The notes: generated by a model from the sequence alone, not told the origin. 64,000 nt of DNA from Thalia democratica (GCA_965202585.1 OZ241826.1:29326001-29390000); one strand, 5' to 3'; counted from the stretch's first letter, positions 25,189-55,900 are shown. A program made the numbers and translations.

Positions 25189-25615
25189 TTTTAAAAGCCC
25201 TTCAAGTGGGCTCAGTTGAAAGTGTTTAAGTTTAAACATTAACCTTATTTTATATATACATATATATATACATATATTATATATATATACATAATTAAAG
25301 TGTTTTCGTAAGGATAGTTTTTGTATGAACAGATTTAAAACGTTTTACTATGCTTAAAAAATTATTCGTTTTTTGTAAAATTAATGCACTTTAATTAATT
25401 ACACATGTTATTTAATCAGTTTGTCTCAACAGATGCTTATAAATGTCAAATTTATTTTGGAAATAATTTTTATGCTGAAACAGCGATAAACGTTTAATTA
25501 GGTGCCTAACAAACAAGTAGGAAAAGTAAGATTTAAAAATGGGGGAAACTTTATTTATATCATTTGGTTGCGGGTTACCATTGTTTTCATAATCATAGTA
25601 AAACGATAATTAAAG

Positions 25616-26095
25616 GCGGCACCATTTCAAACACTAATTAGTGCCAGTCATGTTCAAAGCCTAGCGACTCGTCAAAGAAATCCTGAACTACATCTCATCG
25701 ATGACGTGTGGAAACTGCCATCTCGAGGTTATGTTTTTAAAATCTTTAATTTTAATTGTTTTTTGTTCGTTAATGTGAAGACAAAAAATTTTCGTATTGC
25801 TTATTAAAAAACAATAAAATTCAATTCTAGTTTGAAAAGTGATTTTTTTCTTTTAAATGCTCTTCTAGGTGTAATATATCCCAATATCTAGTCTTTGTAT
25901 TCAGAACTCCTTCTTTAAACCGTAAAAGCTTAAACTACCAAACTCTGACAGGGTAATGTAGGCCGTAAATTCTAAAACTGAATTAAAATCTAATAATTTC
26001 ATACAGGTCTAACAAAGTCGAGAGTGGAAAAGTTCAGGACTTTAACTGCCGACCAGTCGAACTAAAGCAATGCTTGCTCGATATGCATGAGCAAT
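25616..26095 (+). pseudogene. Inverted, truncated RING-family pseudogene (paralogue of 308-790)
   Basis: Exon 25616-25727 (AAPFQTLISASHVQSLATRQRNPELHLIDDVWKLPSRG). Exon from 26007 reads LTKSRVEKFRTLTADQSN*SNACSICMSN (TAA 26063-26065), then RING homology stops. Confidence 0.85.
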
Positions 26096-28039: not shown

Positions 28040-30842
28040 TTACTCGCAAACAAACACATGCCTACAGTTGGGGCACGTGTTGTGTTTTTCGAACCACTTG
28101 GTGGCGCATTTGGTGCAGAAAACGTGTTTCCCGCCACAATCGAGCTCGATCAGCTGCTTACCGGGTTCAAAATCACTCATGCATATCGTGCACGCATCGT
28201 TTACATTGGACTGGCTGGCCGTGAATTTCCTGAACTTTTCCATTCTCGACTTTGTCAGACCTGTACAGATTATTTAATTTTAGAATTTTTTATATTCGTT
28301 TAAATTACTTTGTTAAGGGTTGGTAGTTTGCGACTTTCCGGTGTAAAGAAAGAGTTCTTAAAATAAAATATAGATATCACCATAAATTAAGTCTAGGTTA
28401 ATATTTAAAAGGAAAATTCATATATTAAATGAGTTAGAAGTCTTTTTGGTTTTAAATAAACAATACAAAAATAATGAAAAATTACTTTAATGATTTTTAC
28501 ATTAACTAAAAAAAGTTTCTTTCTAACAAAACCTTGAGATGGCAGTTCCCAGACGTCATCGTTGACATCAAACATCAACTCTTCATCACCGACGTTATTA
28601 AACAAGTAATCACCAAAGTCATCACCGACGTCATTAAAGAAGTCATCACTGACGTCATCACCGACGTCTTCAAAGAAGTCGTCACCGACGTCTTCACCGA
28701 CGTCTTCAAAGAAGTGATTACCGAAGTCAACACCGAAGTCATAAAAGAAGTTATTACCAACGTCATCAAAGAAGTCATCAGCGACGTCATCACTGACATC
28801 ATTACCGACGTCATTACTAGCACCATTATGATAATGGTTAATGTTAACAGTATGTTGTAAGTTAGAGACTTGGCTACTACCGACTTCATCGTAAATGTTG
28901 ATATTCACATCAAGTTGTGCATCCGGGCTACTTTGATAAACCACTTGGCTTTGAACGTAACCGGTATTCATTTGAGTTTGAAGTGGTGATGCCTGTGTGA
29001 AATTGTTTAAAAAACAAAGAAAAAAATACTTAAATTATCGTTATATGATGTATATAAAAAAAATTGTAACCTTTTACTTAATACATTTCTTAAATTAAAA
29101 GTATAATATTTGAAGCGTGTAGTCCATTGTAGTTTGCAAATGATGTTTGTAAACCCAACTGTAAAAAAAATGAAAATGCATGGTAACATTTATACTTGTA
29201 TTAAAAATAAAAACTAAAGGTTTGTTTAATGTTAATGGACTACACGACATTTTACATAATCAAGTTTTTAAAATTTTGATAATGAATAATGAAAACAAAT
29301 AACAAAATTAATTGGCATTATAATTATTTTCCTATGTAAATTACAGCTTATATTCTATGTTAAACATTTTTTTTACTAAAATCACAGTTAACTTGTTAAA
29401 TAAGTTCTTTACTAGTTCTGAAACGCTGGACTTTGCTAGGTTTTGTCTTAGCTTGCCAAAGGTCTAATTGTATCTAAACTTGAAATTTTGACTTCAATCA
29501 GGCTCAGATTATACTGATTTAAAAAATTGGTAATAGCCAATTCTGGTTTATTTTAAATTTTTAATAGAAATTTGAATCGAACCAATCATACCTATAAACT
29601 ATCCTAACCGTTAACTTGTTTTAGGTCCAACTAGAACGAGCTACGACCATTTTTCAACAAAAAAATCAAATCCTGACCTGAACCAATTTTTCAAATAATA
29701 TCTAGTTGGATCTTGTTTTTTGCAAGGGTCAGATCTTGTGTTAGAACATTAATTAAAACTATTTTAGTTTGGTAAACTTGCTAAATTAAATGTAACTAGT
29801 TAAAATATTAAAAAATGTAGAAGTTATGCCTTTATTATAAACATTTTAAAGTGTTTTATGGAATTCTAAAATTTTTAGTAGAAGCTATGGATATTTAATG
29901 GTAACAAAATAATAGTATATCTTTAATTTTAGTCAGTTTTTTACTTTCAACGTTTGGATTAAACTCTTAAGTTCTTAAAGTTTAAATAAACTTTCATAAT
30001 AATTAGTGAGGTTTTTAGAAATTTAGGTAAAATAAGTCTTCTTTAAAATTTAATAAACTGCATTTCATATTAAGAGGTTTAAGAACTGTTTTTAAAACAA
30101 CTTGTAAACAGGGTTGCCAAATGTTTTCGGTAAATTTTTTCCAGGTTTTCAAAGTTTCTTCAAGGTTAAAAGTACACATTTTTAAATATATTAAAGTCTA
30201 TATTTATGTATTAGGTAAAAAACTGTGATGAACAGTATATAAACATTAAAACAAGATACTCTAAAGCTACTTTAAATGTGTTTTTTAATTAAAACATTTT
30301 GATAATGACACATTTATTTGTCTTCTTGATAGATTTTTTGAGTCAAATCAGAGTTTTTATACTAAACATGTTTAAATTATTAAAAATTCAAAAATTTTCG
30401 AGTCGTTTTTAGTTATTTTTTGTTTAGAATTCTAGGTTTTTCAGTTTTTTTTTTCAATTTTTTTAAACTCTAGGCTTTTCCAGGTTTTTTAGCCTAAATT
30501 TTCAAATTTTAGACTTTTCTAGGTGCTTCCAAGTTTCAAGGTTTGTTAGCAAGCTGGTAAAAGATTTAAAGTCTTTATCTGAAATTACAAAAATATAAGA
30601 TTTAATTTCAGCAAATTTGTAAAACTTTAAGAAAATTTACTAAAAAAATTGTGGGTTATACAAAAGTTTTTACAAACTTAGTCTTTGTCAGAAATAATAC
30701 ATTTATATAAACTAGTGTTGAAATTTGCACGAATTAGAAAAAAAAACAACAAAATGTTATAGAAATATACGAAAGAAAAGAAGCTGAACGTTACCTGAAC
30801 ATTACTAGACAGAGAAAAATTATCAGAATTTATTTCATCCAT
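28040..30842 (-). CDS. Class I acidic-repeat RING putative E3 ubiquitin ligase, copy B, intact, 242 aa
   Basis: Exons 30842-30795 (MDEINSDNFSLSSNVQ), 28992-28533 (ASPLQTQMNTGY..DDFFEDV repeats..DDVWELPSQ) and 28260-28040 (GLTKSRMEKFRKF..CTICMSDFEPGKQLIELDCGGKHVFCTKCATKWFEKHNTCPNCR). 48+460+221=729 nt, open. Confidence 0.88.
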
Positions 30843-33800
30843 TTTATCTAATAAATCTGTAAAATAACTTAACAAATTATTTCTCAAGCTACATAATAAT
30901 TGTAAACTATTAAACTTTTAAAATTGTAGTAAAAGAAATATCTACTTAAAATTGCAAAGATTATTTGTGTTTTTTTTTTTTGAATGTTTAGCAGGGATGA
31001 ATGTAAGCTTTTTTGGGAGGACTAGCACAGAATTTACTTGAATTGTTAAACTACATTTGGTACAGTTTAAAAAACATGTTATAAAACTAAATTAGTACAT
31101 GCTAAACTAAATAATTTTTTGCTGTCTTTATTTATAGTAATATAAATGTGACTCACTATTGAAAAAAGTATATATTCTCACAAACTAGCATAATATTAAG
31201 TAAACCTCTTTGAAATACCATATTTTTGAGTAACTTTTGTTCAGTTCACATATAATTAATCACATAGTTATATTTATAATATTTTATATACATTTCTGAA
31301 CTATTATTCGATAAAAATTGTGTTTGTTTTAGAATTGTTCAGTTAATAAATAAATCTGAGCTTAAAGTTTTAACTTTAGCTAAGCAAATATAATTCTATG
31401 TAGGAAAAATGTGATGGTTTTATCCCTGATAATTCTAAAGTATCTTTCAAAAACTATGCATCATTAGATAGCATTCAATTATAGCAGGGACGTAGCTAGC
31501 TCAATAAAGTTACGAATCTCCAAAAATTGAAACATCTGAAATAACTCGTGATATAGTCCTAGCGGGAACACAGTAATTTAAACTATCTCTAATATTATTG
31601 AATTTTATCTAAAAAAATGTAGTTATGTTAATACATCAAAAATGGAATGTTGAGGTACGAGTGATAACTGTATACAAGGCAATTTAATTTGCTCCACAGC
31701 CCCTTTGACTCTTTATGTCTTGCCACTTGTGTAAACCAAAAAACATTTATTAATTGGTAGGAATTTTAATAGGTAGTTTTAAATATTGGGTATTTTCAAT
31801 TGCAGCAAATTTGCGAAAAAAAAGTACCAAATATTTTGATGACTTCATTAACTTTACTTTGGGTAGTTTTGAAGCTTAGACGTGTAAAAAAAAACAAAGT
31901 TGCTGTCCAAGCCTATGACAAATTCACCTTTTTTAATTTTCTAAAATATGAAAATAATCATATCTGAAATAAAACAATAGAATAATACTAAACATTTCCC
32001 TATATTAACAAAATTATAGAAATATTTTTTATTAACATAAAGTTACAATCTTAAATTCAAACATAAATTAAAAAAAAAAACATTTTTTAAAATTTTTCTT
32101 TTATAGTTTATTGATGAATTTAAATTCATAAAAAATTTTGAACTAATTATACATGAGTAATGTACTTCAATAAAAGCTACCTTTTTATAGTTTAAAATAA
32201 AGTTAACAGGGTGGCCATCAAACCTAAATGCTTATGGGAATCTTGGAATGTTGTATAAAATCTTAGAATCACTTGAAATTCTGATCACTTATTTTGTCTA
32301 GAAAAGTAAATAAGACTTAAATTTAAAAAAATTTATTAAATTTTGAAAAATTGAAAGAAGTTTTAAAAAAACTTCAGGGGCCACCTTGGGTACAGGGAGA
32401 GTGTAGATCACTTTTATTACAAATTGATGTCACTTCATAAAATTTAATCTAAACTACAAGTATCTTTATACAGATTTTTATACCAAAACAAATTTTTGAT
32501 ATAAAACATTAAAATAGGAGAGTACAGTAGGTTTTAATTGTCATCTTTTGCTATTTTTTAAACATTGAAAGGAATACTTCCTTAAAATTTGAGCAGGGTT
32601 GCCAAAACACCTGGAATCCAGGAACTTGACAGTTTAAACACAAACTGGAAAAACCTTGAACTTTGGAAATTAAAAAATTTGAATATATATAGTGTTTAAT
32701 AAAAAAAATCATCAAAAAATCTGTAATTTTTAAACTACTTCTACATGTAAAATAATGAGTTTTTTATAAAGTATGATAACTTAAAGTCATTAAAATCTAT
32801 AAAAGAAAAATTTTCAAAGTCAATAGCTTAATTTGTGGTTGAATTAATTTAAAATTGTAACTCACACATAAAATATCAAGGTTGAAAATTATATTTCCTT
32901 AATTTTGTTAACATAGTGAAATGTTTAGTATTGTTTTATTTCAGATATAATTATTTTTATATTTAGAAAAATAAACAAAGTGAATTTATCATAGTCCTAG
33001 ACAGCAAATTTATTTTTTTTACAAAGTTTAACCTTAATAACTGTAATAACTACCCAAAGTAAAGTTAATGACATCATCAAAATATTAGGTTTTTTTTTTG
33101 CAAAATTGAGGCAATTAAAAGTACCCAATAATTAAAACTACCCATAAAAAGTTGAAAAGTCCTACTCTTCATTAGAAATAAGTATAAAAAATCAGCATTT
33201 AACTCAAAAACACTTATACTGTTTTCAAAATCAAACATTTAGCGTAGTCAATAGTAACAAAAAAATATGCAAATTTTTGTAACATAAAATTGTATGATTT
33301 TGATTTTTGAAGCTACAGCTTCCTTTAGAATCAATTTTGTATTCCATTTTTTGACAAAATAAAGCTTCAACGCCCTAAATGTTACAATCTGGATGTATTT
33401 AATTAATTCAATTTTTTTACGACACTAAAAATGCTAAAGAGTACATATATGACAAAATTATCTCTCAGGAGTGCAAAATTAAGCATAAATGAATACTAAA
33501 AGCTTAGACAGCAGAGTCTTTTCAAGCTGTAATAAAAGCAAGTTTTTTCGCCCATAAGTATACGTTTCTGTAGATTTGCAGCACCTACCAAGATACGTCC
33601 ATGAATTAAAGTAAAAAGCTAAAATTAAAATAAATGTTAAGTTGTTCCTATTAAAAACAGTCACATTTAAATAGTTTAATAACCATGATTAGCTACTAGT
33701 TGGATTTCCTATTTTAAGCAACATTTTTTCAAAACCAATTTATCTTTAGTCAACAACACAAAAATCTATATATTTAGTGATCTACTGTATCCGGATAAGA

Positions 33801-36800
33801 ATAATTTTTTAAATTTAAGATCCGGCCGAATCCGTATCCTAAATTTTCTATCTTGAATGTTATATATTATGAAACTTAATTACTATTATACCATTAATAA
33901 ATAAAAACTTTTTAATACAAACATTTGTTAAATAGACACAATGTTTTGTCTAAATATTATATTTGAACACTAGAAAATAAAAAGAAAGTATTCAAAAACC
34001 TACCCATACAAAATCTCAGACTTATTTCTAGGTCTTTTTATTTAATATAAAATACCTAAAATGACAGGTTTTAAATTTAATTTTTTTGAATTCCAGGTTT
34101 CCAGGTTATTTGACTCCTGTATAAATAGAATAATATGTGTAGCATACACTTCAAGTATGGTTACCTCTTTAAGTTTCTAAGCTGTCTTAAAAGATTGAAA
34201 ACAATACTTTGTAACCTAAACTAGCCTAAGTTATCCTGATGTGTTAATACCCTGAGAAATATTCCTCTTTCTACTTACTTATAACCTTTTTTCTTTCGAA
34301 AAATTGTGTTAAATTTGATGTTTATTAAACATATGTTAAGATAAATTGTTAAAGTCTAAGAAAGATAGCTATAACGATAATAAAAAAATAAATTAACTTT
34401 AATAAACAATTATTTTAATAACGTTAGTTAGATAAAACCAAATAAAAAAAATAACAAAGTATTAGTTTTAGTTAGTTTTATTCTCATTTAATATCTAAAA
34501 AGCAGTTGAAAAAATTAAAAAAAAATAAAACTAACTTGAGTTTTTCACAAAAAACTTAGTTAGCATTAGTTTTTAGAAAATGTTTAGCTAGGCATTAGTT
34601 TCTTGAGCTGTCTAAAATATTTAACAAGCTAAAAAACACAAAGAGTTATCTTGAGTGTTCTTATCATACTGAGTTTGTGGCTGCTACCTTGTTTAATATA
34701 AACGTTATCCTCAAGAAAACACACAGCATGTATGTATATAAAACAAAGTGTTAAAAATATTAGGCTACTGTAACTTTAAAGAGGTATCAGTTGTTCAATA
34801 TAGTTTGAAACATTTTACAGAAAAATTCTATACCACTATATACTATTTTTCATCCAAACGAGGGCTAAAAAAAACTTACTTTGTAAAGTTAAAAGTTTTT
34901 AAATAGAATATTGTCGAGTAATTGTCGCCTCTTTAAAGTTGTAGTAATCAAATATTAAATGAGATGAATTTGCAAAGTTTTTAGAGCATTAAATATTTAT
35001 AAATAAGAATAAAATTTGTAAAACAAAACTATGAAGAATTTTAACAAGCTGAAATACATTGAGTTTTAGTACTTTTCTTATATTAAAAAATAAAATATTT
35101 TTTAATTTAAAAATAGAACTAAACTATAAAAGCAGTAGAAGAATCTAATCTGCAAGAAAACTTAATTTAACAATTCACTATTTTTACTCTTAAGGATATA
35201 TGTACCTGTATATTAACAATAAGTAATTTAACTAACTAATTTTTAACTAGTCTTTTCGCTTGACTAATTTTAAAAGTATATTATTATTAATTATTAAGTA
35301 TTCAAAAAATATAAAACTTATAATATATAACTAAAAGAAGCTATTTGCGGAAAACAATTTTTTGTAAACTTACTGGATCCGGAGCCAGCTAAGTCTCAGC
35401 TAGGATCCGGATCTTTTTATTCGAAATTAAGTTCTTTTAGATCATTAAATTTAAGATACATTGCTCCCTATATGAAAACCACTTATCTTAGTGAAAAATA
35501 AGAATCAAATTTATTAGTAAATTTCTGTGCTAAATAGCATGCAGGAATCTACATCAATACAACATGATTTTAAAATGCTACGATAAAATATTTATATAAA
35601 AGATTACTGCACATAGAACTTATTTAGATCACATTTTCTGCAGAATTATAAGTTTAGTTAATAATAGTAGTCAAGAACTTAATATTTTTTTACATAAAAT
35701 ATAACTTTTATTTAAATTATTGCAGCATTTTAATTCAGTTAGTTATACTCAAAGTTTAATTGAAAAACTGAAGCAGGGTTTCTTTTCAAAGTTGAGTCTT
35801 GGTATAAAAAAATGTTTTGGAAACAAAACTGAATTTTAAAGCTGGTTACAGTTTTTTTTTCAGTTTTATAATTTTTTTTTGTTTTTTGTATGTTAATATT
35901 CTAGGAATCAGTTGGTAAATTCAACATTCGAAATTATAAAAATATATGAAAATAAGTATAGTTTTTTATTCAATATCTTTTTCAGTAAAATAATCTAAAC
36001 TTGCTTTCTCTCTAAATGTAGCACATGCCCAGGAAATAAGCCAATAGCTGCGTACAACTACATATTATACATTATAGTATATATTTAGATTGTTCTAGGT
36101 TAAAAAAAAATTCTTAAACTTCTTCAGTAATAAGAAATAACTGAATCAAATACTATATTAGATTTAGCTGCATTTATTTGTAGTAATATAAACATGACTA
36201 ACTAAAAATAATAATAGTTATAGTCAAAAAGTTTAATTGTTTTAAGTACACCTTTTTAATAATAACAGTAATAAAAGTTTTGATAACAGAGATTTTTTAA
36301 AGTTCAGTAATAATATATCATGTTGTAAAATAACTCTACTGAAATTTCACTTTTGAGTGTTTTTGTATTTAAACATCTTTTATTAAATATATTTTGGCTC
36401 TTTGTTTTCATTTTAGTTAAAAAACTTCAAATCTATCTATAACAAAACTTAATTATGTTATCCACGTAGCTTTTAAGTATCTTTCAATGTACTGCTTAAT
36501 TATTTTTAGTTATATTAGAAGTTGAAAGAAAATTTTTTAACTATTACTATATGTTAAATCTATGATATGTTAAAAATCATAACCGAAATAATTTTTTTGT
36601 GCACCAAGTCCTAGGACCAAATATTATGAGCGCTTACGTTTTTTCAATAAACAATATACTACACAGTCAAATACTTGTACTAAATTGAATTATTTTTTGT
36701 ATGGTTTAAAATTTAATAAACATTGCCGCCTTGTTTTTTAAGCCAACCTCCTTACAACCAATAATAATCTAATATATTAGTCAACTATCATGCTAAAAAG

Positions 36801-38582: not shown

Positions 38583-40003
38583 TTAGTCGCTAACAAACAC
38601 GTGTTGGCAGTTGGGGCATGTGTTGTGTTCTTTGAATCATTTGGTGGCGCATTCGGTGCAGAAAACGTGTTTCCCGCCATAATCGAGCTCGATCAGGTTG
38701 TTGCCCGGTTCGAAATCACTCATACATATTGTGCACGTATCGCTTACGTTCGACTGGTCGGCAGTGAATTTCCTGAACTTTTCTACTCTCGACTTTGTCA
38801 GACCTGTACAGATTTTTTAGTTTAAAAATTTTTTGGGTACGTTAAAATTACTCTATTTAGGGTTGGTAGTTTACGATTTTTTGGTGTAAAGAAAAAGTTT
38901 TAATACAAAATCTAAATGTTTGGCACAAATTAAATCTACGTAAATACTTGAAAGAAAAACTCATGATTTTAACTAAGTTAGAAGTCTTTAGTCTTTTTAG
39001 TAAGCAATACGAAGATAACAAAAAATAATTTTTATGTTCTTTACATTTACAGAAAAAAATTACAAAAAAAAGAGAGTCCTTTGTAAAACAAAACCTTTAG
39101 ATGGCAGTTCCCATACGTCATCGTTGGGATCGAATAATAATTCATCATCACTATCGTCATCAAAGAAGTCATCAATGAAGTCATCACTGACGTATTCACC
39201 GACGTCATTACTAACGTTATCACCGACGACATCACCGACGTCATTACTAACGTCATTACTGACGTCATCACGAACGTCATTATGATAATGGTTAACGTTA
39301 ATAGTAAGTTGTATGTTAGGGACCTGACTATCACTGACGTTATCGTAAGTGTTAATATTGGCATCAAATTGCCCACCTTGGCTACTTTGACTAACCACTT
39401 GGCTTCGAACGTGACCGGCACTCACTGGAGTTTGATGTGGTGCTGCCTGTATTCAATTTTTTTGATGAGTTTAAAAAACTGTTAATTCACAACCAAATGA
39501 TTTAAAATGTGTTAGTCCTATTTTTAAACCTTACTGTGTTTTTTTATTTTTTAGCCACCCAATTCAACGTTTATCTTTATCTAAGCCCAAAAATTTCTCT
39601 AAAATAAAGTCAATACTATTTATATGCATCTATTGAGACTAAATAGCTGAAAAATTCGTGTAATTAAGTAAAAAAAGTTTATGTTACTGTAGTTTTAATC
39701 GTTATAAACTAAAAAAAACAGTTAAGATTAATATACAAAAACCGAAACACTTTTTTAGTTAAGTAAAGCTTCCTTAATTTTTTCAAAACTTCTTTATTTA
39801 TTGTTTAAATACTTCTATAAAAAAAATCGAAATAGCCTTTTATTGGAAACCACGCTGGAAGTTCCTTTTACTTAATATATTTTATAAATAAAAAGTACTT
39901 ACATGTATTTTACAATTACTAACAAGTACTTACACAATTTCAAACTTACATAATTTTGAGCTTGTTGTCCATTGTAGTTTGCAAATGGTGTTTGTAAACC
40001 CGG
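38583..40003 (-). pseudogene. Class I RING pseudogene, copy Z
   Basis: Exons 40003-39950 (PGLQTPFANYNGQQAQNY, phase 0/0), 39446-39095 (AAPHQTPVSAGHV..DDVWELPSK) and 38803-38583. The RING has Cys3->Tyr (TAT 38681-38679), Trp->TGA (38639-38637) and linchpin R->Q. No 16-codon first exon was found upstream. Confidence 0.88.
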
Positions 40004-40353
40004 CTGTAAAAAGTTAAAAATGCATGATGAATATTTTACTTCGATTATAAACAAAAACTATCTTAATGTCAAAACATAACTCAAGTTATTAAAAATATGA
40101 TGATAAATTAGGAAAACATTAAATAAAATTGCTTGGAACTTTATAAATTTCCACTTTTATATTACAGCATGTATTCAATGATAAACTTATATTTTACCAA
40201 AACTACGATTAGTTTATTAATCTGGTTTTTTACCAGATCCGATACTCTGACGGATCTGGCCTTGGCTTGACAAAGATGCAATTGTATTTAAACTTGAAAA
40301 ACTGATTTAAACCCAGTTCCGACTATAATGATCAAAAAAAAACTGGTACTAGC

Positions 40354-43141
40354 CAGTGGCGTAGCGTGGTGTTTTGGTCAGGGGGTGCGCAAATTTTTTT
40401 CTCAAAAAATCCCCTAAGTTGCAACTTTTGCAATTAACTATAAAAAGATCGTTTATAAGTAATATAATTGAAATAAATTCATTAAGTAAAATAAGTTCAA
40501 AGCAACTGTTTTAAAAAATAGTTATTTATTACAAAATTAAATAATTAAAAAAAGTGTAAACTTTATTCGAATTACTTATACTTATACAAATGTAAACTTA
40601 CTTCGAGGTCGATTTTCTTGGAAATTTAAAAGATTATTAAAAATCTATCTTCTTCTTCATTTTTCAAGCAATCTTTATAAATTTTATAAAGTGATCCTTA
40701 CTTTACAAAAAAAAAAACGTAATTTATGAATTTTGATAATTAAAATAAATATATATTTTATAAAAAAACTTTAAAATTTATTTTTATTTTTCATAAAAAA
40801 TACATTGTTACTACAATTTTTTTAAATTCACAAGTAATGTTATTTTATTATTGTAAAAAGATTAAACTGTTAAAGTTTGAAGAAGATTGTTTGAAAAATG
40901 TAGGAGGAGATAGATTTTAAACAAAATAGTCTTTCTCGCTGTTTTAGTTTTCCCTTCCCATAGGGAACCTATTATGCGGCCCAACTTTGACTAGTCATAT
41001 CTCAAAAAATAATTCGAATTTTTTATAACAATAAAAAGCACCTTATTGCTTAGAAAAAGTTTTATAAGTTAAGATCAACTTCTAAAAAACATGGCTTACC
41101 CCCCTATGGCCTTAAACTACAAATAAATAGTCAACTAAGTATAACAATTAATGCCTCTAAACATTTTCTCTGTGCATTTTCTATATAATTTTTAATATCT
41201 ATTTTATATCAACAAATAGAATTGTATTAAACTAAAAATAACTCATACTTTTAGTTTGTTGCAGCTTTTAATATACTATCTCTATCTTTTATATAAAAAT
41301 GTTAAATCTTCAGTATTAAAATTAAAAGTCTTAAATTTTTTATTTATTTGTAGTAAAAATCTAAAGAGCTAGTTTTTTTTAACTTCTACATTTTTGGCTA
41401 TATTACAAAATAAAACTGTAAAAATATATCTTAACGAATGAAGAAAATCTGAAATATAAACAAAAACTAAAATTTCATACCACTTGAACTGCAGTCTTGA
41501 GTAATAGCAATATCTGGTGTTGGTCTGCTATTTTTCAATTCAAGTTTTTGAACTTCAGATAATTTTCCTATCTGACATATTTTTAGATTTGCAACATTCC
41601 ATACAATACTACTTTGCATATTTTTTTAAAATAATAGTCTAAAAATTAATGAAAACAGATTTTTACTTTTTATTTAGTATTATAAAACAAATTTTCAAAA
41701 AAAAACAAACAACTTTGAAGGTATCAGGATTGCCTTGCCACTCTTTGAGTCAAAATAACTGTCCTGAGTTAGTTTAAAAATATCATGTGTCATCATAGGC
41801 GTTTTAAATTATTTCAAAGATATTTTTTATTGTTTTTAAACTAATAGAAACTAGGCTCTTAAAAAAAAGCTTTTAAAACCACTAAATCTACCCTGAGTTA
41901 ACAAAAAAACAAATATATCCTTAGTCAGCCTGAGCTTAAAAATACTTAATTTTATAAAATATTAAAAAAGTTATCCTGGTTTTAACTGAGTCATACTAAA
42001 GTTTTCCAAAACTTCATAGAATCTTGAGTTATCCTGAGTGTGTGGAAAGATTTTACTAAATGTTTCTGATACAAAACAAAAAATTTAAAAGATAAATTTT
42101 TGAAGGTCAACCTTTTCCATGCTTTTAAAAATTAACAAGAAATATAGCTTTTCATTTATCTTGAAATTTTCTATGATCTTTAGGGAATAGCATTTTTTAA
42201 ATACTACAAACAGTAGGTAGAAAGATTTTTTTTTAATTACCATTTAAACTTGATTTAAAATTAAATAAATTTAAGTTTAAAATTAATCAATTAAGTATTT
42301 AAGACTAAATATTGATTGTAAAAAATCTGTTTTACAAGTTGCTATAATATTATTCATGATGTGACTGAAGAAATTTTAAAATAACTAGCTACAAAAATTG
42401 ATTAATTTTTAAACTTTATGGCTGATAGAATAGCAAAGTTTGATTTGTTTGTTATCTTAATAAAAAAAGAAACTACTTTTAATAAAAATTTTAAGTTTAG
42501 GGTAATTTAAAGAATACTTTTTGTACAGTTAGATTAAAACTGCAATCACAGTATGAACTGTTTATTTAATATTTGTTTTAATTTTTATTTTTATTGTTAT
42601 TTATCTTTTAGATTATGTTGTTAATATTTTTTGTTCTTATTATCAATTTATTTTAGTTTTATTAGCAGTTATTAATTGCTATTTTTACTACTATTTGTTT
42701 ATTCTTGAATCATTATCACTATAAAACAGGTTTAGCTTTATGGTTTGCTAACAAAATGTTAGCATTTGTCCTTGTAGTAAATTCTTTCATAAGGTTATAC
42801 TACTGCGGTGCACTAACTGATTGCGTACTGTTTGAGTGTAAATTCTTATGAAGTTAATGAAGTTATAAAAATTTTCCTAATGGAGTTTTGCATCAACATT
42901 GGTGCACATTTGAAATTACGCACCGAATCAGTATACTGGGTGATTTCCCTAACTTGTCAATAATTGGTATTTCAAATTTCGTTTTACTTTTCAAATACTA
43001 GAAAAATTTAGTTGAAAAACGGCAAATTAATCAGAAAAAATAAACAATAAAGAATAAAGATATTACATTTTTTTTACTTCTTTATTTTTCTTTTTTGGGT
43101 GGCACGCATGCGCCAGCGTCCCTCCCCACGCTACGCCCCTG
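40354..43141. mobile_element. hAT-superfamily DNA transposon, probably non-autonomous, 2788 bp
   Basis: TIRs CAGTGGCGTAGCGTGG (40354-40369) and CCACGCTACGCCCCTG (43126-43141) match 15/16. Perfect 8-bp TSD GTACTAGC (40346-40353, 43142-43149). The empty site is visible in paralogues (gtaatagccaattctgg at about 4671 and 29530). Confidence 0.93.
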
Positions 43142-44483
43142 GTACTAGCCAATTCTGGTTTGACCTAAATTTGTGACAAAAATTCTGATCCAACTAATCA
43201 TATTTGAAAGCTATCTCAACGAATTATCTTGTTTTGGGTCAAACACTCAAACTACAACAAGCTACGACCATTTGAAAAAAAAATTAAATCCTGATCTGAA
43301 TCTAATTTTTCTTTAGTGTGTAGTTGGATCCGGATTTGGGCAAGCTATTGTTAGATCTATCGCTTAGATCCGTCAACCACTAATTACAACTTTTTTAATG
43401 TAAAAAACTAGTTAATTTAAATTAAACTAACTAAAATTATAAAAATGTAAATGTTATGCCTTTACTATAATTTATTTAATTTTTTTTATGAACTTTCTGA
43501 ATTTTTAATAAAAAATAAGCATATTTGAATATTCTTTTAATTTTAGTCGTTTTTTACTCTTTTACGATAGTTAAACTTTTATTTTCTTAAGTTCATATAA
43601 ACTTTCCTTAATATTGAAGAGGATTTTAGAAACTTAGGTATAATAAGTCTAATAAAAAAAAAAGCATTTAATATTTAGAGTTTGAAAAACTGTTTTTCAT
43701 ACTACTTATATACAGAGTTGAAAAAGATTTTTGCCAAATTATTTCCGAGTTTTCCTCCAGGTTTTTTAAAAGTACACATTTTTTGGTCTATATTTAGTTT
43801 AAAGTTAAGTTAAGGTAAGAAACTGTGTTAAATAGTTTATATAATATTAAAAAGATACTCTAAAGCTACTTTAGCTGTGTTTTTTTAAACTTTATAAATA
43901 TTTAAAATAGATTTTGTGAGTCAAATCGAAATTTACACACTAAACATGTTAAAATTGTTAAAAATTCCAGGCTTTTCCAGGTTTTTTAGCCTAAATAGTC
44001 AAATTTAAGGTTTTATCAAGGTTTTAAGGTTTCTTGGCAGCCTGTATATAAATTAAAAGTGTGTATCTCAAAATACAAAAATAATTGACAATGTTTATAA
44101 TAAAATAATATAAATAAATACTCAATAATCTTTGATTAACATTTAGCAAACTTGTAAATTTAAAAAAATATATGATTGAAAAAATACGACCTATACAAAA
44201 GTTTTAACAAAACTTATGTCTCAAAAGTGATATGTATCACTTCCAAATAAAAATAAAACGACATGTAGTCTGTAAAGTGATTTTTTTTAGGAGTCCTTGC
44301 TCGTGCGACAAAATACTTAGTGCTAATACATTCAATTACTTTTATAAATAAATGTTTTATGTTCATAAATGTTTCTCACTTGAAACTTTTGAGTTATCAA
44401 AACTTAATAAACTAATGCTACATTTATAAGAAGGACTAGTATTTAGACAGTTTTTAATAAAAATTAACAAATATATAAGTTAC

Positions 44484-47400
44484 CTGAAAAATTCTTGGTT
44501 GGCTAGTATAAGCAACAGGGTAAGGATAAACCAAAGGATTATAACCAAAAGAATTCAAAAGTGCCCTAATGTAATTGTCTTGAGCAGTATAGTATGCTAG
44601 TGCTGCATTGTGCATATTTTAAGCAAAATAATTTGTAGGTGGTCGAAACCTGATGTTTTGAATATAAATATTAGAAGGTGCTCCAATGTTATTGTTTTGA
44701 GCATAAGTATTAGAAGGTGCTCCAATGTTATTGTTTTGAACATAAATATTAGAAGGTGCTCCAATGTTTTTGTTTTGAGCATAAATATTAGAAGGTGCTC
44801 CAATGTTATTGCTTTGAGCATAAATATTAGAAGGTGCTCCTATGTTATTGTTTTGAGCAGAAGAATTAGAATGTGCTCCAATGTTATTGCTTTGAGCATA
44901 AATATTAGAAGATGCTCGAATGTTATTGCTTTGAGCATTAATATTAGAAGGTGCTCCAATGTTATTGTTTTGAGCATAAATATTAGAAGGTGCTCCAATG
45001 TTATTGTTTTGAGCATAAATATTAGAAGATGCTCCAATGTTATTGTTTTGAGCAGAACAATAAGAAGGTGCTCCAATGTTATTGTTTTGAGCATAAGTAT
45101 TAGAAGGTGCTCCAATGTTATTGTTTTGAGCATAAATATTAGAAGATGCTCCAATGTTATTGTTTTGAGCATAAATATTGGAAGATGTTCCAATGTTATT
45201 GTTTTGAGCATAAATATTAGAAGGTGCTCCAATGTTATTGTTTTGAGCATAATTATTAGAAGATGATCCAATGTTATTGTTTTGAGCAGAAGAATAAGAA
45301 GGTGCTCCAATGTTATTGTTTTGAACATAAAAATTAGAATGTGTTCCAATGTTATTGTTTTGAGCAGAAGAATTAGAATGTGCTCCAATGTTATTGTTTT
45401 GAGCATAAATATTAGAAGATGCTCCAATGTTATTGTTTTGAGCATAAATATTAGAAGATGCTCCAATGTTATTGTTTTGAGCATAAATATTAGAAGGTGC
45501 TCCAATGTTATTGTTTTGAGCATAAATATTAGAAGATGCTCCAATGTTATTGTTTTGAACATACGAATTAGGATGTGCTCCAATGTTATTGCTTTGAACA
45601 TAAGAATTAGAATGTGCTCCAATGTTTTTAGGTTGAGCATAAATATTATAAGATGCTCCAATGTTATTGTTTTGAGCATAAATATTAGAAGATGATCCAA
45701 TGTTATTGTTTTGAGCATAAATATTAGAAGATGCTCCAATGTTATTGTTTTGAGCATAAATATTAGAAGGTGCTCCAATGTTATTGTTTTGAGCATAAAT
45801 ATTAGAAGGTGCTCCAATGTTATTGCTTTGAGCATAAATATTGGAAGATGCTCCAATGTTATTGTTTTGAGCATAAATATTAGAAGGTGCTCCAATGTTA
45901 TTGTTTTGAGCATAAATATTAGAAGGTGCTCCAATGTTATTGTTTTGAGCATAAATATTGGAAGATGCTCCAATGTTATTGTTTTGAGCATAAATATTAG
46001 AAGATGCTCCGATGTTATTGTTTTGAGCAGAAGAATTAGAAGGTGCTCCAATGTTATTGTTTTGAGCATAAATATTAGAATATGCTCCAATGTTATTGTT
46101 TTGAGCAGAAGAATAAGAAGGTGCTCCAATGTTATTATTTTGAGCATAAATATTAGAAGGTGCTCCAATGTTATTGTTTTGAGCATAAATATTAGAAAGT
46201 GCTCCAATATTACTGTTTTGAGCATAAATATTAGAAGGTGCTCCAATGTTATTGGTTTGAGCATAAATATTAGAAGATACTCCAATGTTATTGTTTTTAG
46301 CATAAATATTAGAAGATGCTCCAATGTTATTGTTTTGAGCATAAATATTAGAAGGTGCTCCAATGTTATTGTTTTGAGCAGAAGAATAAGAAGGTGCTCC
46401 AATGTTATTGTTTTGAACATAAATATTAGAAGGTGCTCCAATGTTATTGTTTTGAACATAAATATTAGAAGGTGCTCCAATGTTATTGGTTTGAGCATAA
46501 ATATTAGAAGATGCTCCAATGTTATTGTTTTGAGCATAAATATTAGAAGATGCTCCAATGTTATTGTTTTGAGCATAAATATTGGAAGATGTTCCAATGT
46601 TATTGTTTTCAGCATAAATATTAGAAGGTGCTCAAATGTTATTGCTTTGAGCATAAATATTGGAAGATGCTCCAATGCTATTGTTTTGAGCATAAATATT
46701 AGAAGGTGCTCCAATGTTATTGTTTTGAACATAAATATTAGAAGGTGCTCAAATGTTATTGCTTTGAGCATAAATATTGGAAGATGCTCCAATGTTATTG
46801 TTTTGAGCATAAATATTAGAAGGTGCTCCAATGTTATTGTTTTGAACATAAATATTAGAAGGTGCTCCAATGTTATTGTTTTGAGCATAAATATTGGAAG
46901 ATGCTCCAATGTTATTGTTTTGAGCATAAATATTAGAAGGTGCTCCAATGTTATTGTTTTGAGCATAAATATTAGAAGGTGCTCCAATGTTATTGTTTTG
47001 AGCATAAATATTAGAAGATGCTCCAATGTTTTTGTTTTGAGCATAAATATTGGAAGATGTTCCAATGTTATTGTTTTCAGCATAAATATTAGAAGGTGCT
47101 CCAATGTTATTGCTTTGAGCATAAATATTAGAAGATGCTCCAATGTTATTGTTTTGAGCATAAATATTAGAAGGTGCTCCAATGTTATTGTTTTGAGCAT
47201 AAATATTAGAAGATGCTCCAATGTTATTGTTTTGAGCATAAATTTTAGAAGATGCTCCAATGTTATTGTTTTGAGCATAAATATTGGAAGATGTTCCAAT
47301 GTTATTGTTTTGAGCATAAATATTAGAAGATGCTCCAATGTTATTGTTTTTAGCATAAATATTGGAAGATGTTCCAATGTTATTGTTTTGAGCATAAATA

Positions 47401-47963
47401 TTAGAAGGTGCTCCAATGTTATTGTTTTGAGCATAAATATTAGAAGATGCTCCAATGTTATTGTTTTGAGCAGAAGAATAAGAAGGTGCTCCAATGTTAT
47501 TGTTTTTAGCAGAAGAGCTAATAGGTGCAGCAAAATTATTATTTTGGGCAAAATAGTTAGAAGCTCCCATGTTACTGAATTAACTTAAAGAGTAAGTAGG
47601 TGATCTTGTGTTACTGTTTTGACTAAAAGAGTAAATAGGTGCTCCTGTTTTATTGTTTTGAGCAGAAATTTCAGCAGGTCTTCTAGTAGGGTTGTTATGA
47701 GTAGAAAGATCAAGAGGTGTACTAAAAAAAATTTCATTTCAAAGAGTGAAATTATTATTCGCTGTAGTATTAGTTGTTGGATATGCTCCAGAAGTTTGAA
47801 CACTTGAAACAGAAGTTGAACTAGGAAAACCTTCAGCATTGAACCTATCACTCTCACCATTAGACTGTGTCAAGTCAATTGTTTCTTCTTCTTTTTGCTT
47901 TTTGTTCTGGGTCAAATCAATGATCTCACCAACTCTCGTGTTTCCATTTCTGGACGTTTCCTC
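44484..47963 (-). pseudogene. Giant 1160-codon exon: two SIMs plus about 80 x 13-aa N/S/A-rich repeats, interrupted by five stops
   Basis: Acceptor ttccag|GAGGAAACG is homologous to the class II exon-2 acceptor. One frame runs EETSRNGNTRVGEIIDLTQ..ETIDLTQ.., then (NNNIGA[P/S]SNIYAQ)n, then ..YTSQPRIFQ|gtaact. 3480 nt with no frameshift. Stops at 47741, 47582, 46751, 46634 and 44621. Confidence 0.75.
44560..47760. repeat. 39-bp minisatellite, about 73 regular plus about 8 degenerate flanking units
   Basis: Consensus (+) aatgttattgttttgagcataaatattagaagg/atgctcc. Unit length is preserved throughout; counts are estimated from span/39. Confidence 0.97.
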
Positions 47964-48519
47964 CTGGAAAAAAATATTTAAAACTTGATAATTTTTTTTT
48001 AATTCAGATTAAAATTTACTGCAAAATTTTCTATGACTTATATGGTTAGTTATATTAAGTAACCTTTTTTTTCATACGTTTTTTACTGTTAGGTAAAATA
48101 GGAAAAAGTTTTTAGTATGCAAAAATATTCTTTATATTATTTGTTTCTAACTTATTAATCAAAAGTTCAGCGTGATATTTTCTTAGTGTCATAAGGGGTG
48201 CGGAACAAGATTAACTTAAATGTTGTCTTTTTTATGCTAGCCTGAGCTAAAATTTAATGATAAAACTTTTTAGAAATTAAAACTACCTTGGTCTAAAGCA
48301 GTTTATGTTGCCTTTTGGTGTTTAAAATTTCTACTTCATTTATCACAAAATTTAACAGAATGTAAATTCATTGAACTTTATCAACGAGCAACAAGTTCAA
48401 CTTTACAAGATAAAAGCCAAAACTCGTTGGTTTATTATTTATACAGTATATTATAAACTAGACCATCCTAACATCGAGTTAAAACATAACATAGGGTTTA
48501 TTGGTTCACATCGTGTTTA

Positions 48520-48900: not shown

Positions 48901-50662
48901 TTAGTCGCAAACAAACACGTGTTTGCAGTTTGGGGCACGTGTTGTGATCTTCAAACCACTTGGTGGCACATTCAGTGCAGAAAACGTGCTTCCCGTCACA
49001 ATCGAGCTCGATCAGCTGCTTGCCGGGTTCGAAATCACTCTGGCATATCGTGCACGCATCGTTTACGTTCGACTTGTCGGCAGTGAATTTCCTGAACTTT
49101 TCCACTCTCGAATTTGTTAGACCTGTACGGAATATTTAATTTTAGAATGTTTTGTATACGTTTTAATTACTTTAAAGGGTTGGTAGCTTATTTTTTTCCG
49201 GTTTAAAGAACGAGTTAACTAGGTATTGGGATAATATTACATCTTGATGAGTGTTTAGAAGAAAATTATGATTTTGAACTAAATCATAATTTTATTGTAT
49301 TTTAAAAGCTTAACGAAGATTTGATTTGTCTTAAAAGTTACAAAAAAAAGTAAATAGATATTTTTAAAATGAATTTGTCAAACAAAACCTTGAGGTGGCA
49401 GTTCCCAATCGTCACTGTCGTCATCATTTTTGTCATCACTGTCAAAGAAGGAACCGTAAAAATCAATGACGCCATAACCGAAGAAATCAATGACGTCATT
49501 TTCGACGTCATCACAGACGTCATCACCGACGTCGATTGGTTCTTCTTTCTTTTCATTTTCGTTCTGCGTTACGTCAATGATCTCATCGGCTCTTGCATTT
49601 TCATTGATTGACGTTTCCTCCTGAAAAATTTTAATTGAAAACTTGTTAAAAATTTTATTAGTTCAAAAAATGTATTGCAGAATGTCCCTTAACTTTTATA
49701 GTTAGTGGAAAAAGTAATAATTATCTTTTATGAGCTTTATCAAAACAAGTAAAAATTATAAAGTACCGAAATGCACTATAACATTACAACATTATATTAG
49801 TTGTTTCTAAAATGCTTATTAGTAATACTTTACAGTTGTTTAAAAACTGGTATATTAAAACTAAAGATATTTTTATATAAATTTTCATATTGAAAATGCA
49901 AAAATAATTTTAGGAAATTAAAAAGGCACAGTTTGACCTAAAACATAATGTAAAGCAACTACATAGACTTAATTTAACAAAACTGCTTCTCATCATTTAA
50001 AACTTATGATGTTTTTGGTTTTTGAGCTATTGTACTTTGTATAATTATTAGTACTGCAGCATCAACAGTTTTTAGGGCTTAAAGATAATCAGCTTTAGCA
50101 ATAACAATCATAAATAAAAATAACTTATCAAGTGTAAAATTGATAGGAAAAATACAAAAATTTTACAATTAATTTTTTAATGCTAGATTTTAATTTGAAT
50201 TTACTTACAAATTACGTTTTAAAGTTTTACTAACAAAAAAAAATTAAAAACATATAAGAAATAATAATAGTTCATTAAAAACAATACAAAAAAGAATACT
50301 AAACTTACTCTTTGTCAAAAAAATTATATTTTAAATGAATAAGTGTTGAAATTAATGTACTCCAATTAACTACAAAAAAAATCTTTAAAATTTTAGAGTA
50401 ATATACAAGTGGGTAAAACAAAGGAATAGTATTAGCTGTTATTGTTAATTAACTTCTTTTTTTTCGTTTCGTTGCTACTTTCAACTTTATGAATTGTCTT
50501 TTGCTATAATACCATGCTAAAAACTGTTTTTTTTATAATTAAAGTTAACCTGTAAAAAAAGAAAAATTACAGACAACATATTTAATATATAAAGAAGATA
50601 ATTAAAAACATTACCTGCACATTATTATGCGTAGAAATATTATTTAAAACCTTTTTATCCAT
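48901..50662 (-). pseudogene. Class II SIM-acidic-RING gene, copy b, with a +1 frameshift before the last Cys (or an assembly indel)
   Basis: Exons 50662-50615 (MDKKVLNNISTHNNVQ), 49620-49389 (EETSINENARADEIIDVTQ..EPIDV..WELPPQ) and 49122-48901 (222 nt versus 221 in paralogues). An extra T at 48929-48931 turns CPNCK into CPKLQTR. Confidence 0.8.
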
Positions 50663-52929: not shown

Positions 52930-55900
52930 ATTTATTTACGTACCTTAATACTAACGCGATTAAGTTAAAGGTTTCTGCAGCTGTTAAAAGTATTAGGTTG
53001 CTGGAAAATTGAGTAATAAAAAATGTTCAATCAAATTAGTTGCTAGGAGCTTAAGGTAAATTGATTACTCTTAAAAAATACAAATTTGAATCTTAACAAG
53101 CAGATTAAACGTACACTTGAAATTCAAATCTCCTGTTAAAGCTATAGAAATAAAGATATACAAATAACTGCTATTATTTAGAGGCAGTTAAAAAAACTGA
53201 TAGTTTTGATGTTTTAAAGTATACTGTTTATGTTAGATTTTTAGACACTATTTTATATGTTAAGTTAATAAAGTGAATATTCTGTGAAAAAAAAAAATTA
53301 TGGGGTCACATATTGAGTTTTTTCTTCTAAACCTTAGCATAGATAGAATTGTTTTTAATGACATTGAAATATTGTTGTATTTGAAATATGTGTTCTGATA
53401 GACCAAGTATTTATTATTTAGTTCATTGTTTAAATATAGTATCGAATCGAAAATAAATATTTTAACAAACTACTTTTAAAACATTGGTTGAGACGTTAGT
53501 TTTTTTCTACTAAGAATGAAAAGCTTTAACACTTATTATGAAATTTCCACTAAATTATGAAAATATAAACAAACTTCTAACTTGTAAAATATATAGAGCT
53601 AATTAGTTATCTTTATATCGCTAAGTACCTATAATCCTTTACAATTTTGTTACGCTATAGAACCAATAGTCTTTTTTTCATTGGTAAACTTGAAATAAAA
53701 AACGTGCTCTAATACAAAACGTTTTTTATGAAAGATGTTTAAATTTTTATTTGTTTAGTCTGTTATAAATATGTTACAAAATATATAACATAATACACAT
53801 TTTGTTTTTCTAAATCAAATGTATTACAAATGTACAAAAACTTTAACGATCGTTTAAATTAAAAAAAACTCTTATATTTCTCCAGTCTAATTTTGTTCAG
53901 TAAAAACAGAAAAATAAGGAGCACATATGTATACAGCCTTAAAAATTATTCTAAACTTGGAAAACTATATCATAACTAACTATCAATTAAATTTTGAACT
54001 TTGGCTAATATCAGGTTACTCAGGATAGTTTACATTTTTTTTATACTATTTAAATAATCGACTTGCTTTAAACAACTTTTAAGCAATATTTAATTAAAAT
54101 GTTATTTGTTCTTTTTTATATCGTTTATGCCAGACCATAAAAATATTAATATAAATATAGATATATGTTTAGTGACTCAGGTTATAGTTTTTACTCGTAA
54201 AAAAAATTAGAACGATAATGCTTTTAATGAGAGAATTTAGTTATAATCACTTTTAAGGTTTAATTAGTTGTAATAGCTGCTAAGGACTAACTACCATGGT
54301 AAATAATAAGAAACAATATTTAAGTAGGTGTTAATACGGAGAAAATCGTTTAAAACTCTAACATAAGCTTATCTAACTTATGTTAGATTTTTAAAGTTAG
54401 AGTTATTATTTTAAACAAACAAATTAAAACCAGTATAAGTTCTAAAAAAAAAAATTTTTTTATCAAGTTAAAAAGTAAGAACAATAACAAACAGATCTAA
54501 AAACGGGTTTGCAAAGAAACAAAATTTTATTAACATATAGTTATTAATTTTGTTTTATTAAGTTTTATAGTTTGCTGAAACATCGGATAGCCATTAGATT
54601 TTAAAAAATATCCTCTATGTTTTCTGATTTTCTTTCTGTTTTTTAAACTAAATCTAGTTTAAAAATGAGATTTACTTTTTTTAACTTTGAAAAGATACTA
54701 CAATTCTACTATAACTATATTATTTTATTACTAGAGTTATAAAGTTTCGATTTAAATATATTATTTATAAGTAGAAAGCAACATTGTTATGTGCAGTTTT
54801 CTATTTTGTTTTACTTGGAGAAGTAGCATTTTTTTGTCACCATAAACCTGGTTGTAAATTAAATTTTTAATTTTCTCATCCCTTTTTAAAAAAATTTAAT
54901 AGAAAAAGTTTTATGTAAAACATAGTTCATATCTAGTCTCAAATTTATTTTTTACTAGTAAATATTGTTCAACTTTTTGAATTTTGTCTCTTTATTTTCA
55001 ACTGCAGGTTTTTATGAATTTCAGGTAATTTTTTTTCAGGTAAAAAATTTCAGCTAATAGTTTTAAGCTATAATTTACGTAAGGGATTTTTACGAATTTC
55101 TAGGTTTCTATGACCTTGATAACCTGAAATGCAAGATTTAATCAAATAAAAATTTTTATAATATAAAAACTTTGCAAGGTTTAATAGTTTATTTCACTAA
55201 AGTGGTTTATTATTCTAAATCGAGTCTTTTCAAACTCATTTTTATACGGACCGTCGAAAGAAATTAATAAAAAAAACTTTTCTTATATAATAGACAAAAA
55301 TTAATTCTTAATCGGTTTATTTTTCATCGCCTTTTTAAAAAACACCCCCTGACAGCCAAAACCTTCAGTAAAGAGGCAATATAACCGTCTTTGGTAAACC
55401 CTGGTCTCGGTCCGATTGTGATGTGATGGTATTTTTTATAATATTTGATGAGTAAGCCAAAATTGAAAAAGGCTTTTTTAAATTAACTCTTAATTTTACT
55501 TTTATTCCATACCCGTCTTATCCAAACTAATTAAATTAATTTTTAATAGATAAAAATAAGAAAACATGATAATTTTTTTGCTGAATTAGAAGATACTAGG
55601 GGAAAGAATGTCACTTTCCAACAAGAATTCACTAGTCTTGGAGATTAAATTTAAATATTTTATTACTAACTAATTACTTTAATATTTATGCAGTTAAGAT
55701 AAAGTTTTTAACAGCTATTAAAATTATCAGGTTGCTTGAAGTTTGAGTAGTGAAGAAAATTTAATCAAATTATTTGCTTAGAGTTTAAGATAAATTGATT
55801 AATTTTATTTAAATCGTAACAAGTAAATTTAATTTACACTTTAAATTTTAAGCTTTTCTTAAAGTTATAAAAATTTACATATAGAAACAACTGCGGTTTC

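Follow-up and report, generated by a model that had tools for sequence, protein, structure and literature searches.

SUMO-targeted ubiquitin ligases, of which RNF4, Arkadia/RNF111 and the yeast Slx5-Slx8 are examples, have a cluster of SUMO-interaction motifs (SIMs) of the psi-psi-D-L-T type in their N-terminal part and a RING at their C terminus; in RNF4 the SIMs are of the IVDLT/VVDLT type. In this study of a 64-kb stretch of the salp Thalia democratica (GCA_965202585.1 OZ241826.1:29326001-29390000), which we refer to as the window, we describe a 9.4-kb locus at 38583-47963 where a giant exon, starting with two motifs of this type and continuing into a 39-nt minisatellite, lies upstream of the exons of a small RING gene, copy Z. 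The window is AT-rich, with a GC content of 22-31% in 2-kb bins, its genes are spliced, and all of those discussed here are on the minus strand, as are the exons and introns of the locus itself. An earlier note on this DNA had read the locus as a chimeric giant gene, the remains of an ancestral protein of about 1370 aa in which about 1000 aa of repeat separated the SIMs from the RING. Our preferred explanation, which we hold to be somewhat likelier right than wrong, is that this gene copy is dead, has lost its 5' end and preserves traces of a full-length ancestral layout from which the two classes of RING gene in the window are each one deletion away, and that its repeat has grown largely or wholly after selection lapsed.

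Self-comparison of the window with tblastn and blastn revealed clustered small RING genes that fall into class I (copies A, B and Z) and class II (copies 21k and 49k). The giant exon, at 47963-44484, is 3480 nt or 1160 codons long in a single frame. It opens at the acceptor tttttccag|GAGGAAACG, which has its match in the acceptors of class II exon 2 (49620 and 21345), and it closes at the phase-0 donor CAG|GTAACT, so that the 3480-nt exon of the earlier note, running from a class II-type acceptor to a phase-0 donor at 44484, is borne out. Its translation starts EETSRNGNTRVGEIIDLTQNKKQKEEETIDLTQ and passes through about 100 unique residues before reaching the repeat. The SIM-SIM head, EETSRNGNTRVGEIIDLTQNKKQKEEETID (47874-47963), is 77% identical to the start of class II exon 2 and holds EIIDLTQ and ETIDLTQ, spaced 13 residues apart, which at the level of motifs gives the at least two SIMs looked for in a SUMO-targeted ligase. 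These motifs are conserved with the EIIDVTQ/EPIDV of class II, and the divergence is biased to third codon positions, the differences in the first 90 nt being distributed as 6/4/11 and 7/4/10 over the three positions; this bias shows that the head stayed under protein-level constraint after its split from class II. Past the head comes a unique, coding-like stretch that grades into old degenerate 13-aa units (47544-47873), then the minisatellite (44658-47543), and then a tail (44484-44657) consisting of three degenerate units, 59-67% identical to the consensus, and the unique sequence YPYPVAYTSQPRIFQ, which leads into the donor.

Several properties of the giant exon speak to its past. The GC content changes abruptly at both splice sites, from 0.35 in its head and tail to 0.23-0.25 in the introns on either side. 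In the non-repeat head there are 2 stops, against 9.7 expected from shuffles (P=0.002), the proposed frame is the one with the fewest stops in the tail, and on both sides of the array the diverged edge units keep to the register set by the SIM frame and the phase-0 donor. With these features, the derivation of the giant exon from a real internal coding exon is supported. The frame is now interrupted by five stops, two in the post-SIM stretch (47741-47739 and 47582-47580), two within the array (46751-46749 and 46634-46632) and one in the tail (44621-44619).

The exons that follow on the same strand are those of copy Z: an 18-codon exon, PGLQTPFANYNGQQAQNY (39950-40003, phase 0-0), an acidic exon (39095-39446) and a RING exon (38583-38803, 79-81% identical to the other RING exons in tblastn). 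All the phases are compatible with the giant exon, and the earlier note had rightly placed the exons at 40003-39950 and 39446-39095 in phase 0 on the way to a RING. The 18-codon exon has a canonical donor, TAT|GTAAGT, which is lost in copies A and B. The acidic exon is open, contains a 12/36-nt tandem repeat of the DDVS type and ends with WELPSK in phase 1, and it has a GTG in place of the ATG of copies A and B. With its acidic exon devoid of an ATG and its 18-codon exon still furnished with a donor, Z must have taken its reading frame from upstream exons. The RING exon of Z has a ratio of non-synonymous to synonymous divergence (dN/dS) of 0.20-0.22 against copies A and B (0.20 against A), with dS of 0.44-0.52, and was thus under constraint for most of its history. 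We infer that the giant exon and the Z exons were probably once spliced together and worked together. The Z RING is no longer competent, with an in-frame TGA where the paralogues have Trp and a Tyr where they have the Cys that is the third zinc ligand; while the earlier note had listed this stop and the five in the giant exon, all of which are present, the lost ligand comes in addition.

The intron that separates the giant exon from the 18-codon exon can be followed in pieces. Its first 262 nt (44222-44483) have no homologue within the window. The next segment, 43151-44221, is homologous to intron 1 of the class I copies A and B from 123 nt past their exon-1 donor onward; the homology of Z to copies A and B thus stops at Z 44221, about 123 nt into the intron 1 of A, and copy Z is without a first exon of its own; the earlier note had described both, putting the shortfall against copy A at about 100 bp. 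A terminal-inverted-repeat transposon of 2785 bp (40355-43139), with the terminal inverted repeats AGTGGCGTAGCGTGG and CCACGCTACGCCCC, is flanked by 11-bp target-site duplications, TGGTACTAGCC, at 40344-40354 and 43140-43150. It is found only in the copy Z intron, the sites in copies A (4668-4679) and B being empty, has no long open reading frame (ORF) and is probably a non-autonomous DNA transposon. The remainder of the class I-type intron, 40004-40343, runs up to the acceptor of the 18-codon exon. Without the transposon this intron is about 1.68 kb long (4.48 kb with it), and the equivalent in copy A is 1.62 kb.

At its 5' side the locus is truncated. Upstream of the acceptor, about 190 bp (47964-48157) are a remnant of the 3' part of a class II-type intron 1; the following 157 bp (48158-48314) match nothing in the window, and at 48315 the 3' flank of class II-49k starts. 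A low-stringency search for homologues of 44222-44483 and 48158-48314 returned AT-rich noise only. No exon 1 or promoter belonging to the giant exon or to copy Z was found in the window, and Z has no exon-1 homologue. In class II the start codon is in a 16-codon exon 1, about 1 kb upstream of exon 2, and that the giant exon has neither an exon 1 nor a promoter of its own is a point that the earlier reading overlooked. As the class II start lies in the upstream exon 1, the ACG at the position of the internal ATG of 21k is not a lesion. Exon 1 of class II-49k, MDKKVLNNISTHNNVQ (50615-50662), with its phase-0 donor, is the nearest and only in-frame upstream start exon for the giant exon, and its use by read-through seems possible from the phases. 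About 100 nt upstream of the acceptor, at 48063-48075, ATG AAA AAA AAG followed by GTTACT can be read as a phase-0 start mini-exon of 4 codons, at a level that chance would provide. Its six in-frame stops, the loss of a zinc ligand, the absence of an exon 1 and the transposon within the intron make the locus an unprocessed pseudogene.

Comparing the locus with its paralogues, the homology forms a mosaic, in which the head and the ~190 bp of intron upstream of it match class II, and everything from Z 44221 downstream matches the class I copies A and B at 70-77%. We split the family sequence into six segments: P, comprising the promoter, exon 1 and the initial ~125 nt of intron 1; M, the remaining class II intron 1; S, the SIM head; R, the post-SIM stretch, the repeat, the tail, the donor and the following 262 nt; D, the class I-type intron, the 18-codon exon, the following intron and the N-terminal part of the acidic exon; and X, the acidic tract, the RING exon and the 3' flank. 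In these terms class I is P-D-X, class II is P-M-S-X, and the giant-exon locus is (end of M)-S-R-D-X, with segment R matching nothing elsewhere in the window. In intron 1 of copy A, class II homology is found at positions 25-125 and Z homology from position 123, which is within 3 nt. Similarly, in class II exon 2 the homology to the giant head extends to 21256, and acidic homology of the class I/Z type begins at 21257-8, within 2 nt; the junction there is GAC|GT, a motif also present in the acidic repeat unit GATGACGTC.

Both coincidences are what would be expected if an ancestor of the form P-M-S-R-D-X had suffered a single deletion in each class, of M-S-R in class I and of R-D in class II. 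A fusion would likewise have a head that matches class II and tail exons that match class I; here both boundaries are also class I/class II boundaries, and the middle 3.3 kb are without a parent, and it seems that the deletion model fits the boundaries better than fusion does. The label "chimeric" thus finds little support: the two boundary pairs coincide within 1-3 nt, as one-step deletions from a full-length ancestor predict, while independent fusion breakpoints would match older boundaries only by chance. In addition, the head is 77% identical to each of the class II copies, 21k and 49k, which are 92% alike in this region, and being equidistant from both implies that any joining event would be about as old as the split between class I and class II. 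The ancestral layout would have been exon 1, a SIM/Asn-repeat exon, the 18-codon exon, the acidic exon and the RING exon. From this full five-exon ancestor, one contiguous deletion would have generated class I, which has no SIM exon, and another would have generated class II, in which the SIMs are joined directly to the acidic tract, while the giant-exon locus would have kept the ancestral exon order and lost the 5' end. In the ancestor an Asn-rich 13-aa repeat would have followed the two IDLTQ motifs, and its core would then have swelled as a 39-bp minisatellite.

The minisatellite, with the consensus NNNIGAPSNIYAQ, consists of one diverged unit (67% identical to the consensus) followed by 73 homogeneous units; Tandem Repeats Finder gives a period of 39, 73.3 copies, 91% matches and 0% indels. 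Together with the ~7 degenerate units that flank the array the total is roughly 80 units, in agreement with the SIM-SIM-(13 aa)x80 of the earlier note. At the DNA level the degenerate units of the 3' edge are 59-67% identical to the consensus, where the background is 30 +/- 7%. The 73 core units, by comparison, have a mean pairwise identity of 92%, which exceeds the 70-77% found between the paralogous gene copies (A/B against Z, and class I against class II); 13 of the 73 are the consensus itself, and the core is a mosaic of few unit types, without a higher-order period, the identity being flat at ~0.92 over lags 1-24. In its translation 28% of the residues are Asn, 14% Ile, and Tyr and Gln make up 7% each; no more than 1.2% are charged, and aromatic residues recur at regular intervals. 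It is likely that an old, short Asn-rich repeat, of which the degenerate edges would be the remains, has expanded in its centre recently.

The single frame through the minisatellite that the earlier note had stressed is real, yet a 39-nt unit without indels keeps its frame automatically, and thus an open frame in the array says nothing about coding. Of the six frames of the consensus unit, three are open. One of the other frames of the minisatellite holds a 903-aa ORF, a LKTITLEHLLIFM repeat at 44840-47551, and the opposite strand one of 625 aa; both exist because the repeat unit is stop-free, and both would mislead ORF-based gene callers. Among the 152 differences of the units from the consensus, 17 are synonymous and 135 non-synonymous, a share to be compared with the 21% expected by chance, so that there is no sign among the array units of purifying selection or of the synonymous excess that would mark a maintained coding repeat. 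The apparent synonymous excess in an alternative frame, TITLEHLLIFMLK, where 63 of the 152 differences are synonymous, does not speak for coding there, as the figure is due to one polymorphic site copied 32 times. The two units that carry a TGA (46751-46749 and 46634-46632) are three units apart and have a common two-site signature on an 'SNNI' background, which indicates that the stop arose once and was later copied, and that the array was turning over after the frame had been broken. The core of the array is thus best explained as having grown largely or wholly after selection on the frame lapsed, and its present size as a neutral expansion after inactivation. With a stop-bearing unit copied within the array and no synonymous excess, about 1000 aa of repeat in the living protein do not follow from the present array, and an ancestral protein of 1370 aa is unlikely. 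The 18-codon exon was also compared with the repeat as a possible degenerate unit, which was not borne out; its best match has 56% identity (P about 0.05), a level that intron controls reach as well.

The preferred explanation has its own weaknesses. The full-length ancestor is drawn by parsimony from one window, and no relative was found in protein collections or metagenome contigs. Local-alignment ends in introns of 24% GC are fuzzy by several nucleotides, and where the second boundary falls varies with the register of the alignment, the acidic tract being made of tandem repeats. A motif of 10-20 nt, GACAAAGA.TAAGTTT, is apparently common to Z, copy A and class II at the boundary, and could mean that Z once had a class I intron start, which would favour a later replacement of its 5' end. 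Finally, TTCAG|GTAAC is common to the giant donor and the donor of class I exon 1, a hint that the rearrangements may have taken another course. One rival, in line with the earlier note, is a secondary chimera, in which class I copy Z lost its promoter, exon 1 and the initial ~120 nt of intron 1, a rearrangement put the SIM/repeat exon of another gene upstream, and the fused gene worked for a while before it decayed. Z does group with class I in every downstream exon and intron (75-77% to A/B against 72.5% to class II), and the upstream intron of the giant exon is truncated and abuts the 3' flank of another gene; the short intron-boundary motif possibly common to Z, copy A and class II fits as well. 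It would need two independent breakpoints that both fall within 1-3 nt of the older class I/class II boundaries, and the ~600 nt of unique, exon-like sequence, the donor and the 262 nt of intron would have to come from elsewhere. Moreover, with a head 77% identical to the adjacent class II-49k and to the distant 21k alike, the fusion would have to go back to about the time when class I and class II separated. We consider such a chimera rather unlikely and favour the relic of a full-length layout over it.

A different history is that the giant exon and copy Z are accidental neighbours that were never spliced together, the giant exon being a stranded fragment of a separate gene with deleted 3' exons, or an alternative 3' exon of the class II-49k promoter, with Z dying independently on losing exon 1 and the phase match reflecting nothing more than the common 0-0 phases of the family. 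Compatibility is indeed cheap where all internal exons before the acidic one are phase 0-0. Damage affects all the gene parts of this 12-kb stretch, the frameshifted RING of class II-49k included, and in-frame splicing from class II-49k exon 1 to the giant exon would be feasible. What makes this history improbable to us is that the Z RING was under purifying selection during most of its divergence from A/B and that Z cannot start in its acidic exon, which together imply that Z had a working upstream coding exon for long; the transposon-free intron, at 1.68 kb, is also close to its 1.62-kb equivalent in copy A. The most sceptical reading would deny that the repeat was ever coding and would see in it a non-coding 39-bp satellite beside a small duplicated fragment of class II exon 2, the Asn-rich translation being an artefact of a stop-free, AT-rich unit. 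The three open frames out of six in the consensus, the 903-aa ORF in a different frame, the lack of synonymous excess within the array and the lack of any protein with this repeat among 1.84 billion representative sequences are all in its favour. Against these stand the diverged edge units on either side, whose register agrees with the SIM frame and the phase-0 donor, the tail frame with the fewest stops, the sharp GC step at a canonical donor and the coding constraint that the head retained after the split from class II, and we regard this reading as very improbable.

In going beyond the preferred reading of a dead relic, one can ask what the intact product would have done. To judge by its motif architecture, it would most plausibly act like a SUMO-targeted ubiquitin ligase, with the two IDLTQ SIMs binding SUMO-modified substrates and the C-terminal RLIM/Arkadia-like RING recruiting ubiquitin-loaded E2. 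Between the SIMs and the RING there would lie a low-charge spacer, rich in N/S/A/I/Y/G/Q, punctuated by Tyr and prion-like in composition, together with the acidic tract. It is conceivable, though we think it doubtful, that the SIM-SIM/Asn-rich repeat/acidic/RING arrangement represents a living class of SUMO-targeted ligase specific to the salp lineage, in which the length of the prion-like spacer varies between paralogues and alleles and tunes condensate or substrate engagement. The present locus would then be a recently dead allele or paralogue, intact versions would exist nearby or on other haplotypes, and deletions in this arrangement would have given rise to class I and class II.

Class I copy A has its RING exon at 2957-2739, its acidic exon at 3747-3229 and exon 1 at 5985-5938, and copy B has the same exons at 28261-28043, 28992-28534 and 30842-30795. 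Copies A and B are part of a recent 11.7-kb duplication, at 94-95% identity, and both are 70-77% identical to copy Z. This segmental duplication spans 1-11762 and 25309-36616 and includes the class I gene, part of a class I gene in inverted orientation and about 6 kb of upstream sequence; the inverted fragments, on the plus strand at 308-787 beside copy A and 25616-26095 beside copy B, hold the starts of the acidic exon and the RING exon. The GT donor of the 18-codon exon is lost in both A and B (4266-4316 and 29108-29158), and the class I-B product is intact if this decayed exon is skipped. Copy A has a TAA at about 3735, four codons into the acidic exon, and just downstream of it is an ATG common to A and B; class I translation may now start inside the acidic exon. 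In class II, copy 21k has its SIM/acidic exon at 21345-21016, its RING exon at 20749-20531 and exon 1 at 22388-22341, and copy 49k has them at 49620-49381, 49123-48923 and 50662-50615. The two units are ~80% identical, and their exon 1, with its phase-0 end, is homologous to exon 1 of class I. The spliced 21k product is an intact protein of 199 aa, while the 49k RING exon has a 1-nt insertion near 48930, which shifts the frame before the last zinc-ligand pair, and class II-49k is probably a pseudogene as well. The acidic tract of the family is a coding tandem repeat of 12/36 nt, with DDVS/NDVG units, whose copy number varies between paralogues (39145-39282 in copy Z, and also in A, B and class II).

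The RINGs are intact in the paralogues 21k, A and B, and the paralogue RING exons match Pfam zf-RING_2 (PF13639) with E=1.6e-13, at 51.1 and 48.0 bits against a cut-off of 27.3. Compared with solved structures, the RING is nearest to those of RLIM, RNF24, RNF165/Arkadia and RNF38, with E values of 4e-9 to 1e-7; single RNF4 RING chains give 4e-4 to 7e-4, and orthology with RNF4 was rejected because these other RINGs score better. Elsewhere in the window, tandem repeats of ~2.7-2.9 kb, at ~71% identity, occupy 52941-58863 upstream of the class II-49k unit. A 132-aa ORF lies within a local GC bump at 16325-16723; a protein-atlas search with it gave no convincing match, the best being clusters of plant DUF594 with a feature score of 0.80, too weak to fall in the reliable range. 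An Rfam scan of the window gave no match.

Searches for relatives of the family were negative. The class II SIM/acidic exon found no match among 5.8 billion protein clusters, the candidate list being swamped by acidic low-complexity words, and no candidate relative came from searching protein collections with the class I N-terminal region or with the RING-exon alignment. A 276-aa piece of the repeat, searched exhaustively with HMMER against 1.84 billion representatives, gave 124 hits, and those inspected were unrelated repeats of similar composition (phage fibre and other N/S/Q-rich arrays). Exact-sequence look-ups of three ORFs of the window found nothing on record, and the back-translated repeat pattern had 0 matches in metagenome contigs. 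Matches of the repeat to the Pfam families RexA and Lysostaphin_N were set aside as repeat artefacts with no significant stretch. An origin from the secreted-RING effectors of grape phylloxera (PMC6892190) was also rejected, as the salp proteins are without a signal peptide and their motifs are absent from the supplement of that paper.

Taken alone the locus is a pseudogene, and decay of a gene copy, with growth of the repeat after its death, is a better reading than a giant chimeric protein. Its value is that of a fossil. No other copy in the window still has the SIM exon connected to class I-type exons, and through it both gene classes can be traced to a single ancestor with five exons, each by one deletion. 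Were intact relatives nearby to confirm this layout, the family would be an unusual, lineage-specific expansion of genes like those of SUMO-targeted ligases with a length-variable prion-like spacer, and it would offer a tractable case of diversification by exon loss in a tandem E3 ligase family.

Set beside described systems, the salp genes resemble several of them in part. The array is like exonic coding minisatellites (variable-number tandem repeats) in having a unit that is a multiple of 3 nt, a homogeneous core with degenerate flanks and a mosaic of unit types, as produced by unequal exchange; unlike them, its frame is broken and a stop-bearing unit has been copied, so that its length reflects neutral satellite dynamics rather than a maintained domain. 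With prion-like N/Q/Y-rich low-complexity domains it shares an Asn-rich, nearly uncharged composition and regularly spaced aromatics, but it is rich in Ile (14%), and its regularity comes from recent DNA amplification. The RING is similar to the RING-H2 of RLIM/RNF12-RNF6 and Arkadia in its GLTK...-type lead-in, the spacing of its ligands and its C-terminal position, while its fifth zinc ligand is Cys and not His (C3HC4), there is no similarity beyond the RING, and the salp proteins are much smaller. In the SUMO-targeted ubiquitin ligases the N-terminal clustered SIM-type motifs and the C-terminal RING have their counterparts here, and RNF4 is similar in size to the intact class II paralogues, of about 199 aa. 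The salp family differs from them in its RING, which is nearer to RLIM, RNF24, RNF165/Arkadia and RNF38 than to RNF4, its tandem amplification and its long acidic tract of the DDVS type, to which the giant-exon copy, now dead, adds an Asn-rich repeat.

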